This document shows positions 1,551 through 12,512 of a DNA stretch of 64,000 bases, piece by piece. Source of the stretch: Tetramitus jugosus (taxonomy: Eukaryota; Protista; Heterolobosea); assembly GCA_937625935.1 (NCBI GenBank), contig OW569391.1, positions 124,001-188,000 on the forward strand. The letters are read 5' to 3'. Position numbers and translations under genes: made by a program. The notes beneath the pieces are model-generated. The model was not told the DNA's origin. It saw nothing but the letters and a program-made list of their open reading frames with translations, and searched no databases. Each line of letters opens with the position of its first letter. The stretch's first letter is position 1.

Positions 1551-2803
<1,253 letters not shown>

Positions 2804-5368
2804 ATAAAGATTTTTTGTTTGAGAAAAAAGAAGCAAGATGTGGGTCGATCAAAAAACATCAGAATCCATACACAAGTGTTAATCATCCACAATACTGTGA
2901 ATTCTCGGTTACAAGCAACACTTTCGTGCTTCAACACGCCACATTGCTTGTATACAAAAACACACTTGGATGATGAGTCATCCACACGTTGTCATTAAAC
3001 AAGTTCTGAGTCAAAGATGCAATACTTGGTAGAGTTTCATATTGGAGTCTCCTCCAGTAGATGATTTCGGTTGTTGTGTGTATTGGTTCAGAGGATGGAC
3101 GATGGACGTTTTCTTTCAAGACGCGAGATTGAACCACCCAAGAAGAAATAAAGCATTTGCCAAACGAGTAACGTCATCTTTCTGTTGTCTAAATCTCAGT
3201 TTCCTCTAAGCTGCGGAATTGGTGCAGTTGTAAAAATTTCCGTTGAGACTGTCTTTACAACGGCAACGGCCATCTTCCTCGGTTTAAAAAGCGCTGTCTT
3301 TTTCGCTGTTTGATTCAACTCACACATCAAATACAACACACAACAAATACAATAACATTATGCCACGAGGCGTGCCTAAGGACGGCAAGAGAAAGAGAAA
3401 GAGAGAGACTGTCAAAAAGGATGAATACTCATCACATTACGTGGTCAAGGTCGGTCTGAAGTCTCTATTGTTGCATCATCCGACTTTGCTACCGATCATA
3501 CAAACTCGTGCTCTGGATATGACGAAGGTTGCTCTTAGAATCACTCGATTCATAAATGTGTTCGTGTTGAGATACTTGGAGAACGATAGCAACATTCCTC
3601 CATTGGATCAAGGATTTATTCAACGGATTGGCTCTGTCTTGTTTGGACCAAAATCAGAAACAAGAGACGGTAATGTTGCCAATGAATCTGTTAATATGGA
3701 TGATGTCATAGTCAAACTCAGAAAGCTTTATGAGAATTTTTCCACATCCATCAATTACGTTGCAAAGTCTCTCAAGGTCAACATCTCCAACATGCTCAAG
3801 TTCACGCTTGAACAAAGACTGAGAAAGTATCTGATAGTCAGAATGAGTCAATTGTGTTCGGATCCATCTATCCCAAGATCCGAATACAGAAGGGTCGTTG
3901 AATACATTATCAGAAGGTTGACATTCAAAACTCCAGTCTATGACTTCATCAAACTGCCTCCTAGGGGGTTGATTGAAGTCATTCCTGTATTAATTCATGA
4001 GGTCAAAACACTTGCTGCTGTTGGAACCGATGAAGTTATTGATGAATCTTTTGTGGATAACAACACTAACAATATGCTGAAGTTTTACTGGCATGTACAA
4101 CAATTTCTGACAAACAATGGTACAAAATCATTTGCTCTGCTTCCGTTGTCTCGCTTCAAATGCAGATGCATGGAGATTGGGACAGAAGAATTAGTTAAGA
4201 TGCTCCAACGGGCAACATATCCAAATAGAAGAAAGAAAAATGACATTCGTGAACCGATAGAATTCAAATACAATCTGAAGTGTTTGAACACCGGCGAAAA
4301 GATGATTCAGATTGATTCTATCAGAACTGACGGTATTCAAGCCTCTGTTGTTATCAGACATCAACTCATTGGCAATCACAAGAACAATAAGGCAGAGAAA
4401 TCTAAAGGCGAGAAACAAGCAAAGAAGATGAAGAAAGAAACAACTATTGTTGATCAAGATGCAGATTACTTGATTGGTATCGATCCTGGTATTGTCACAT
4501 TGATGAGTTGTGCTGATTCAGATGGTAAAAAGTGGGAGTTCTCCAATAAGGCATACAGACGACTGTCTCATCATTCACAGAACACCAAACGTTTGTTGAA
4601 ATACAAAGCAAAATGGAACACGAAAACTGGAAAAGATTTAGATGAACTCCATAACTCGATCAAACAAGCCAGTGTATCGACAAGTGATCTGTTTATCGAA
4701 CACATTGATTCTGTTTTGAAAGTCGAAGATGACTTGCTTGGTTTTTATTGCACTCCAAAGGTGAAGAGACTGAATTGGGACAGCTATATTATGAGAGACA
4801 AAACAATTGCTGGAGTAATGAATGATTTTCACAAAAGAGCAAATGGAAGAAAGATGGTCATTGGCATGGGCAATGCTGGTTTCAAAAATAGTTACAGAGG
4901 ACATGCTTCAACGCCCAAGGGCAAACTGTTGAAGAAACTGAATGAACGATTTGAAGTGAAAATGATTGACGAATTCATGACCAGCCAAAAATGTTGTGCT
5001 TGCCATTCCCATTTGAAGCCAGTCAAGCACAAACGAATGGACAAGAAAGGTGTATCGGCAATCTCTATTGTACGAGGAGTTAAACAGTGTGCAACCACTA
5101 AATGTTTAGTGACTCACAATAGAGACATCAATGCGGCCAAGAACATGCTCCATCTACTGAGAACAGAAATGGATGGACAGTCACGTCCCGATGCCTTCAA
5201 GAGGAAGAAAAAGGTCGCAAAAGAATTAATCAAAATGGTGGAACACCTCCAAGGCTCACTCCATCAAGCTGCTATGTAAATCCCGATTTTGTAGGAGCGT
5301 TAAGGTGTCTTATCGGGAAACCATAATTTTTTTATTATGGCTTGATCGACAGTAGACCGCCACCTTAA
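2804..5368 (+). mobile_element. Non-autonomous Fanzor1 element (left end at 2795 or 2804 depending on TSD model)
   Basis: Fanzor ORF plus structured 3' end, bounded by identical TTAAGTGTTGCGT at 2791-2803 and 5365-5377; removing it leaves a typical ~90-bp intergenic gap between GMD and the next gene; no transposase ORF inside. Confidence 0.85.
3360..5279 (+). CDS. Fanzor1 RNA-guided endonuclease (TnpB/Cas12 relative), intronless, 639 aa
   Basis: RuvC-I GIDPG; Fanzor-type VIGMGNAG..GHASTP segment; shifted catalytic Glu in IDEFMTSQKC; zinc finger CCAC..CATTKC; RuvC-III NRDINAAKNM; basic N-terminal NLS-like KRKRKR. Confidence 0.93.
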   Translation: MPRGVPKDGKRKRKRETVKKDEYSSHYVVKVGLKSLLLHHPTLLPIIQTRALDMTKVALRITRFINVFVLRYLENDSNIPPLDQGFIQRIGSVLFGPKSETRDGNVANESVNMDDVIVKLRKLYENFSTSINYVAKSLKVNISNMLKFTLEQRLRKYLIVRMSQLCSDPSIPRSEYRRVVEYIIRRLTFKTPVYDFIKLPPRGLIEVIPVLIHEVKTLAAVGTDEVIDESFVDNNTNNMLKFYWHVQQFLTNNGTKSFALLPLSRFKCRCMEIGTEELVKMLQRATYPNRRKKNDIREPIEFKYNLKCLNTGEKMIQIDSIRTDGIQASVVIRHQLIGNHKNNKAEKSKGEKQAKKMKKETTIVDQDADYLIGIDPGIVTLMSCADSDGKKWEFSNKAYRRLSHHSQNTKRLLKYKAKWNTKTGKDLDELHNSIKQASVSTSDLFIEHIDSVLKVEDDLLGFYCTPKVKRLNWDSYIMRDKTIAGVMNDFHKRANGRKMVIGMGNAGFKNSYRGHASTPKGKLLKKLNERFEVKMIDEFMTSQKCCACHSHLKPVKHKRMDKKGVSAISIVRGVKQCATTKCLVTHNRDINAAKNMLHLLRTEMDGQSRPDAFKRKKKVAKELIKMVEHLQGSLHQAAM

Positions 5369-5388
5369 GTGTTGCGTTGTTTGATAAA
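5261..5388 (+). ncRNA. Predicted Fanzor omega-RNA (scaffold to 5368, guide from 5369; 5' end uncertain)
   Basis: Stem TCCCGAT(5281-87)/ATCGGGA(5312-18), whose loop TTAAGGTG (5300-07) is complementary to terminal CACCTTAA (5361-68); hairpin CCATAAT/ATTATGG (5321-40); ATCAAGC(5263-69)/GCTTGAT(5340-46). Confidence 0.75.
5365..5377 (+). repeat. Right copy of 13-bp direct repeat TTAAGTGTTGCGT
   Basis: Exact match to 2791-2803. Confidence 0.9.
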
Positions 5389-5459
5389 ATTATTTTACTG
5401 GTCCTGAGTTTTTTCGGCGCCAACTCAAAACTACAGACAAACAGAATCACAAACAGCGA

Positions 5460-10982: not shown

Positions 10983-12369
10983 ATTTCCTGGTTATTAAAC
11001 GCAGAAAAAACGGAATCACATGTCTGGTGATTCAACAAAATTGGTGAAGGAATACGGCAACAGCCGTTATGCACTGCACGGAAAGGCTCTGCGCCAAGTG
11101 ACAGAGAGGTCGTCATTACTGGCAACGGTAATGGTGTCTCTCAGTCATCTTTGGCAAGAAAGATAGGAGAGGAGTTTGGCGACTGGCTCAACCGAGTCCA
11201 AGTCATCAAGAGGAAAGGTCAGCAACGCTTTGTTGCATGGGTGACGGTCAAGGGTGACCGCATCTATGAGTTTGTTGAGTTCTTCAACAAAGAGAGGAGG
11301 ACTGGCAACAGCACTGCTGCACCCAAGCGCAGTGTTGATTGCACAAGAAAGGTGGTCGTCCACGGCATGAAGAACATGTCAGTGGACGACATCAAGAAGC
11401 TGCTGGGTCCTGAGAAGGTTGCCAGTGTGCTCAAGAAGCGTGACACTGCATTCGTGGTCATGGGTGATGAAACCTATGCGCGAGCAGTGCTCAGTGGAGA
11501 GAACAAGGTAAAGGCCACGGTCACTCGAAACGTCGAGAGACCACATGATCCTCTCAAGGCTGTCAACAAGAGGTTGACCAAGATGTACGAGGAGCTGCTG
11601 ACAGTGGTTGACGGACTGCGTCGACAGGTCACAGAACTCACCAAGGAATTAGGAAAGACAAAGGGTCAAGGGGGCAACAAACCGGTTCCAATGCCGGAAC
11701 AAGAAGTTGCCCAAGCCACTGCTAGGATGGAGACTACTCCTGAGCTAGTGGAGGCAGAAGATCACCACTGCCATCAGTGCCTGTTGTACAGCTCAGTGCT
11801 GAGAACCGGCAAATTCTGGAGCAAGTGAATGCCACTTCTCCAGTGTTCGCCAGAGTGAAAAAGGAAATTGCTGCATTGGCGCTGGCTGCTGCACGCAAAA
11901 GGTATGGTTTGACTGAGGACGAACCAGTCATTGTGGATGTGGATGATGACTCCGAAAAGGAGATTCAGAGTCCACAACTCAATGACTACAAGAAGAGGAG
12001 TGCTAGGATCACACTGGGTGATCTGATGAGCAACAAGGCCCAAAACAAGAAAACAACAACAGATGGCTCTGTGCCCATCGACGGTCCTACTACAAGGTTA
12101 CACCCTTTGATGAAGGGCATCAACCAAAACACTCACCAGAGTGATTCCAACCTGTAGATGCACCGTCGGGGACAACAAGAGAGGAAGAGTGAATGACGCC
12201 CTACGGGTCGTCACTCACAAAACAAGTCAACAAATGAGCAATCGTGTGCTTGCTGCGTAAGCACACATGGTTGTATGGAAAAAAAAAATTTCCTGGTTAT
12301 TTACACAAGATTGGTGAAGGAGTACGGAAAAAAGGCTGCGCCAAGTGACAGAGGTCGTCATTACTGGCA
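10983..12369 (+). mobile_element. Repeat-flanked, frameshifted RRM/coiled-coil element (ORF1/gag-like remnant?)
   Basis: Visibly GC-richer ORFs 11031-11828 and 11777-12157 (-1 frame); two RRM-like segments; two hairpins and A10 at the 3' end, followed by a deleted copy of the element's own 5' region. Confidence 0.45.
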
Positions 12370-12512
12370 TCTCTCCAAACACATTCAACCGTCACAACAT
12401 ACTAGGTACCTTGTACACAGAGAAACAACAAAGAATAAACAGTGCAACCATCGGTTGTCAGCAGATAGGAACTGAAATGGTTGTATTTTTATACGATGTT
12501 TGATTTAAGTTC

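Follow-up and report, generated by a model that had tools for sequence, protein, structure and literature searches.

A Fanzor1 gene on a TTAA-flanked, probably Kolobok-type element of Tetramitus jugosus, with a left junction that may record guide-directed homing

Fanzors cut DNA once they have been reprogrammed, but what they do in their own hosts has yet to be proven. The closest solved structure to the protein described here is that of SpuFz1, belonging to the Spu-1 element of Spizellomyces punctatus (PMC10432273; PDB 8gkh, 9cey). Spu-1 is a terminal inverted repeat (TIR) element with 30-nt inverted repeats and no transposase of its own; it has about 19 full-length copies, which are about 82% identical, and the conserved bases CA just upstream of the TA of the left target-site duplication (TSD) extend the TAM. 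GtFz1 of Guillardia theta (PMC10432273, PMC11423790) has a measured TAM of TTAA; its third catalytic residue is an Asn, it lacks inverted repeats, and position 3 of its guide match is the least tolerant one (PMC11423790). In Chlamydomonas reinhardtii, the Fanzor1-Helitron2 elements CRe-1, CRe-2 and CRe-3, which have an HUH rolling-circle carrier, are found 5'-truncated and 3'-intact, with duplications of 7-19 bp right after the target tetranucleotide (PMC3627910). These junctions were read in 2013 as one-ended transposition (PMC3627910), and Fanzor cleavage was later suggested, tentatively, as their cause (PMC10288648); for a Chlamydomonas Fanzor tied to junctions of this kind, no cleavage was seen in vitro (PMC10530073), which counts against homing. 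In the homing of TnpB in IS605/IS607, a guide derived from the flank directs cutting of the vacant site, where the element is then restored by recombination (PMC13565253). Such restorative homing has been experimentally shown for bacterial TnpB and IscB only, whereas for Fanzors the same review has cleavage alone (PMC13565253).

The locus compared here with these systems lies in a 64,000-nucleotide stretch of the Tetramitus jugosus contig OW569391.1 (hereafter the window), where a Fanzor ORF at 3360-5279 on the forward strand sits between a GDP-mannose 4,6-dehydratase (GMD) gene and a Vps39-like gene. It starts with ATG and encodes, free of introns and stops, 639 aa comprising WED/REC, RuvC and TNB zinc finger parts behind a basic N-terminus (MPRGVPKDGKRKRKR). 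Alignment placed the three RuvC acids opposite those of SpuFz1, a protein of similar size: Asp375 (RuvC-I, the D of GIDPG; 4482-4484) with D383, the shifted RuvC-II Glu538 (the E of IDEFMTSQ; 4971-4973) with E541, and Asp589 (RuvC-III, the D of the NRD in NRDINAA; 5124-5126) with D606, all on the forward strand; the last is an Asp where GtFz1 has Asn. A match to Pfam PF07282 above its cut-off, together with conservation and a check of positions, identified the four-Cys zinc finger C545/C548/C577/C582 (4992-5105, forward strand). Fanzors are marked by a Gly or Pro at the canonical RuvC-II Glu position and an alternative Glu ahead of the zinc finger (PMC10530073), and here these are Gly504 and E538, each at least 90% conserved among 108 relatives. 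Likewise, the Fanzor motif of Bao and Jurka, D-X(125,275)-[TS]-[TS]-X-X-C4 zinc finger-X(5,50)-RD (PMC3627910), is represented by D375, T541-S542, C545/548/577/582, five residues and R588-D589.

SpuFz1 was the sole significant PDB match by sequence (E 4e-15, residues 129-616). An AlphaFold model built from the 108 relatives (pLDDT 90.8) had entries of SpuFz1, PpFz1 and GtFz1 as its top seven structural matches (TM 0.60-0.70) in a fold search, with TM values by system of 0.70 for SpuFz1 (at 18% identity), 0.62 for PpFz1 and 0.60 for GtFz1, as opposed to 0.23 for Fanzor2 and 0.24-0.27 for TnpB; an identity as Fanzor2, TnpB or Cas12f was ruled out on the basis of the fold. Judged by sequence and predicted structure, the protein is a Fanzor1, a new member of a known family rather than a new system, and it is likely to be catalytically competent. 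A sequence-only reading of this DNA had proposed an uninterrupted Fanzor1 gene with these residues and this N-terminus, and had called for HMM and structure searches; the ORF and alignments bear out the features and both searches agree with the assignment. Its description of the nuclease as probably uncharacterised holds as far as we searched, since the literature yielded no paper on Fanzor together with Tetramitus. The closest relatives outside its own genome were four metagenome proteins at 58-79% identity, which in a quick tree of the relatives, built without reference Fanzor1a-d sequences, formed one supported clade with the Tetramitus copies.

That reading had also treated the gene as a single intact locus, which is not the case. 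Searching the whole genome (26.35 Mb in 56 pieces) returned 17 stop-free matches over the full length, with identities of 79-100%, besides several that diverge more and many fragments; the element as a whole has dozens of partial copies. The D/E/D triad was kept in all 18 of the full-length proteins of this genome that were aligned, and pairwise dN/dS among the copies ranged from 0.14 to 0.21 (about 0.16). The family thus consists of about 18 full-length ORFs, similar in number to the copies of Spu-1, that are under purifying selection and are mosaics of blocks: the window copy differs from some others by 24% in one half and by 1% in the other. Recombination was evident from an Rm of 39 and from an incompatibility between sites that grows with distance (permutation p 0.001), a pattern to be expected from repeated break repair between copies. 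Among individual sister copies, L019 (on C27) is damaged, with NRD changed to NGD and a deletion of 35 codons. The long copies L003 (704-1348) and L015 (479-1225) each contain a captured C-terminal half of Vps35 (E 1e-44 to 1e-51), with different deletions in the two; its likely source gene is G000:C22:83229-83909 (98%). A further fragment, oriented opposite to the Fanzor gene in the long copies L003 (2-742, minus strand), L014 and L010, reads as F-box, CCCH finger and chromodomain, with a single weak match to zf-TRM13_CCCH (E 0.003).

At its 3' side the gene has a constant layout. The stop codon lies 85 nt ahead of the end of the right TIR, an arrangement repeated in about 20 loci of the genome and on two metagenome contigs, and the right end 3' of Fanzor was identical in kind in two unrelated metagenome samples; that is, the gene sits beside the right end of a eukaryotic transposon. 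In the window, the 13-bp right TIR, which ends in CC (5352-5364, minus strand), and the right TTAA TSD (5365-5368, forward strand) are intact. From its position and conservation we predict an omega-RNA scaffold at 5278-5368 on the forward strand, with a long hairpin in which 5300-5307 pairs with 5361-5368 at the base and 5321-5327 with 5334-5340 in an inner stem. Since the base stem joins an internal TTAAGG to the terminal CCTTAA, the right TTAA would lie inside the scaffold, as has been reported for the right TSD in solved Fanzor1 complexes. The fold was well above background in two distant relatives from metagenomes (z of -5.0 and -3.8) and weak in the window (z only -0.8 to -1.0); covariation did not exceed that of shuffles, which counts against our explanation, and Rfam gave no match for the predicted scaffold. 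Among copies, the predicted scaffold is conserved and the 3' flank is variable; the transcription data (run X7) consist of contigs, which cannot show RNA ends. Deletions in the predicted scaffold were seen in the sister copies L024 (C3) and L034 (C11), where the stop codon is lost too. The guide is predicted to comprise about 15 nt of the host flank (5369-5383, forward strand), a length taken by analogy with SpuFz1 (PMC10432273, PMC13565253), and differs at every copy. The right junction consists of TTAA followed by a perfect target, so that a TAM of TTAA alone would entail self-cutting. A W precedes TTAA at all eight left junctions of this genome with an identified target TTAA, whereas W lies 3' of the right TTAA at 9 of 20 (Fisher p 0.01). 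We predict from these sequences that the TAM is WTTAA, which contains the TTAA of GtFz1 and parallels Spu-1, where CA takes the place of W ahead of a shorter TA.

Complete sister copies start with TTAA followed by GG and end with CC followed by TTAA, and thus have TIR and TTAA at both ends. Kolobok elements are marked, unlike piggyBac, by a TTAA duplication with 5'-RR and YY-3' termini (PMC9587614). This combination was found in the sister copies, and the window copy retains the right terminus alone; piggyBac, whose termini are not RR..YY, was ruled out by the GG..CC ends. Around one Fanzor body, three left-end types and two right-end types occur in mixed combinations. Compared with Spu-1, the family therefore differs in its 13-bp GG..CC TIRs with TTAA, its several end types, its host-gene cargo and, in the window copy, the loss of the left TIR, and it differs from GtFz1 in having TIRs at all. 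A search with the left-end pattern led to the metagenome contig L045, which shares the TIR start and the subterminal repeats and continues into a frameshifted transposase ORF. This broken ORF matched PF20700, a family that we take to include Kolobok transposases, at E 1e-5 and 24.8 bits, under the cut-off of 26.5, and the contig ends past the first putative Asp; among named Atlas clusters, the nearest to it is a Mutator-like transposase.

A PF20700-like transposase remnant thus accompanies the same left end in a relative, and Kolobok elements, known also from Naegleria, share the TTAA duplication and the RR..YY termini (PMC9587614). In contrast, the element of the window copy contains no transposase ORF, and a DDE core, which in a Kolobok transposase would be DDD/E with a C/DxxH signature, was not recovered. 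A search of the genome with the L045 protein gave a 30-residue remnant only and no intact transposase with these ends, which counts against our explanation; a PF20700 search of the genome was blank, but so was its control. On balance, we are fairly confident that the carrier is a Kolobok-type element. Two observations concern other carriers and ends. A 2.2-kb element at G000:C32:2808-4989 combines type-B ends with a Fanzor that is much more divergent (40-44% identity), and may be where the B ends originally belonged. The two metagenome Fanzors L041 and L043 (P0002, P0003), at 63% identity, have in common another 3' end without TIR or TTAA, which suggests that the same Fanzor clade rides another carrier.

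The left end of the window copy is different. The sequence-only reading had supposed that the RNA and the boundaries of the element were intact, which applies to the right end and the putative omega-RNA region; at the left, 39 nt are gone, namely the left TIR and the first subterminal repeat, which are present in six sister copies. In their place, behind an A and the left TTAA TSD, which together form the predicted TAM (2790-2794), stand nine nucleotides (2795-2803) that copy the first bases of the right flank, i.e., of the guide target. The last three of these, CGT (2801-2803), constitute a microhomology with the second CGTATAAA repeat of the element, where the retained element sequence starts. 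A truncated type-A left arm follows (2804-3195; 97-100% identity to sister copies, no transposase ORF), in which a second repair scar of 20 nt (2932-2951) stands where the arms of sister copies have about 75 nt, and contains 2911-2918 once more in inverted orientation. The segment between arm and ORF (3196-3359) is common to all full-length copies at about 98% identity and is likely to comprise the promoter and 5' UTR; all these left-end features are on the forward strand. TTAA and the nine target bases make up a 13-bp flanking repeat whose 13-mer occurs in the window at 2791 and 5365 only, with an expected count in shuffles of 0.00. A normal TSD of 13 bp was ruled out, as sister copies duplicate TTAA only. 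Truncated in this way, the window copy is probably unable to transpose.

The junction falls into a host gene, as the TAA at 2792-2794 belongs both to the left TTAA and, as stop codon, to the GMD gene. A spliced and polyadenylated contig of run X7, RNA-like in having a spliced intron and poly-A tails, aligned without gaps to 2075-2829 across the left junction, which shows that the junction is real. The GMD transcript ends inside the truncated left arm, with poly-A behind 2829, so that the stump of the element forms the 3' end of the host gene. Two short X7 pieces match the window ORF where its nearest sister differs, at a depth of 2-4 and with a neighbouring gene that has no coverage, and are weak evidence that the window copy is transcribed. 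Several further features of these surroundings were noted. The GMD gene (1551-2829) has a 143-nt GT..AG intron at about 1932-2074. The type-A left arm at 2804-3176, of the window or of sister copies, lies under very deep X7 contigs, deeper than those of the dehydratase, with a poly-A tail behind 3176 and no clear ORF. At 10997-12288 a second repeat family is represented, 1.3 kb long with a G+C of 0.51, an A-run end and at least 40 copies at 90-96% identity; its ORF-like stretches match no Pfam family, a portion of the 5' sequence is found again at about 12308-12370, and it looks like a non-autonomous non-LTR retroelement.

A contig of run X1, which is probably the sample behind the assembly, joins 2796 to 5392 without the element, and the insertion is thus hemizygous or polymorphic. 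Relative to a site restored by precise excision, this empty allele has lost 2 nt within the first four target bases and gained 4 nt near +12, and it has more indels near +21 to +24, one of them shared with a groundwater strain. It matches the guide at 5 of 15 positions, the first mismatch being at position 3, the position least tolerant in GtFz1, and judging from these mismatches it should resist the guide of the window copy. However, the 2 nt were lost from a GT repeat, a long way from where the cut would be expected, and the alleles often differ by indels in this intergenic stretch, both of which count against an origin by cutting; a single locus with frequent indels cannot show that they were selected or induced by cutting.

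These observations can be accommodated in one scheme, whose proposed logic resembles the homing of TnpB. Fanzor1 would be carried by a non-autonomous cut-and-paste element with TTAA and GG..CC ends that is mobilised in trans by a DDE transposase. Transcripts reading across the right TIR and TTAA and on into the flank would yield an omega-RNA whose guide corresponds to the element-free site, and the RNP would recognise WTTAA plus the guide target and cut about 14-21 nt downstream, the filled site being spared, as we propose, on account of the CTTAA at its right junction. Synthesis-dependent repair off an element-bearing chromatid or homologue would follow, copy-back being primed at the TAM-distal end, proceeding from the right flank towards the left and, in the case of the window copy, halting 39 nt short of the left end. 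Joining of the copied strand, via the CGT microhomology, to a TAM-side end that had retained some of the target would duplicate TTAA and nine target bases and leave the left TIR missing. The resulting copy could no longer be excised normally but would still be a source of protein and guide, and the empty homologue would survive because indels destroyed the guide match. We favour this account of guide-directed cleavage of an empty site followed by incomplete copy-back, with modest confidence, and incline slightly towards Fanzor as the maker of the left scar. The nine retained target bases fall short of the 14-21 nt to the expected cut, which counts against a Fanzor-made scar, and resection must be assumed.

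An active Fanzor1 would also be compatible with a left junction made without it, by one-ended cutting or joining of a transposase (abortive excision or one-ended insertion), with end-joining that copied 9 nt of the right flank after priming on the shared TTAA, and with indels of the empty allele that represent ordinary polymorphism. The second scar fits this explanation well, since its locally templated inverted insert, 130 nt inside the arm, points to microhomology-type repair unrelated to the guide target, and so does the high frequency of background indels between alleles. Moreover, among the three left-truncated copies whose left junction was read, the target is duplicated in the window copy alone; the other two, L011 and L014, break at or near TTAA without a duplicated target, which counts against homing. 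On the other hand, right ends without a recognisable left end outnumber left ends without a right end by 13 to 2 in this genome (p 0.007), a count that includes the third left-end type, which surfaced only in a later search, and a deletion variant, and that may miss further left-end types. A transposase acting alone predicts neither this bias nor the one-sided W unless it is asymmetric, and it leaves unexplained the contrast in Chlamydomonas, where such junctions accompany Fanzor-Helitrons and were found in 1 of 200 Fanzor-free ones (PMC3627910). We regard this explanation as rather unlikely, although it deserves to be taken seriously.

It is considerably less probable that Fanzor binds without cutting in vivo or serves another role, such as RNA-guided binding or host co-option, with captured pieces like the Vps35 fragments as cargo. 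The presence of these host pieces in the long copies and the low expression of the ORF in X7 would agree with such a role, but no full-length copy of the genome has lost any of the three acids or the zinc finger, and dN/dS is about 0.16; the gene always lies beside the right end with its hairpin, which also applies to two other metagenome samples; and a hemizygous locus does not fit domestication. An artefact in assembling a repeated element could be suspected from its dozens of partial copies and from the fact that none of the DNA contigs listed spans the junction. Given that the gapless X7 transcript comes from a different sample (2025) and that the published assembly is based on HiFi reads with a QV of 56.7 (PMC11106597), such an artefact is hardly credible.

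In a wider reading of the incomplete copy-back account, the genome of T. jugosus would be a record of Fanzor1 homing, in which a Kolobok-borne Fanzor cuts vacant WTTAA sites and copies the element back, at times incompletely as in the window, with ends and ORF segments shuffled between copies; the element could spread to the homologue without a transposase, and guide-resistant empty alleles would remain, as with an engineered gene drive. We put this forward tentatively, as a possibility for which the case falls a little short of an even balance. The junction resembles those of CRe-1, CRe-2 and CRe-3, whose rolling-circle carrier is unlike a DDE-type TIR carrier, and the recurrence of the same junctions with an unrelated carrier suggests that the variable 'TSDs' of the Chlamydomonas Fanzor-Helitrons come from Fanzor. 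As a collection of naturally recombined Fanzor1 variants, for which a WTTAA TAM is predicted, the family is also a modest addition to the available tools, and what sets the locus apart is less one more programmable nuclease than the vehicle and the junction. Kolobok is not among the Fanzor carriers in PMC3627910, PMC10530073 or PMC13565253, and would be a further carrier superfamily. As the host is a cultured amoeba with a chromosome-level assembly, and as the locus combines hemizygosity, a readable guide, a junction like that of an aborted copy-back and a mismatched empty allele, homing by a Fanzor becomes testable in T. jugosus.
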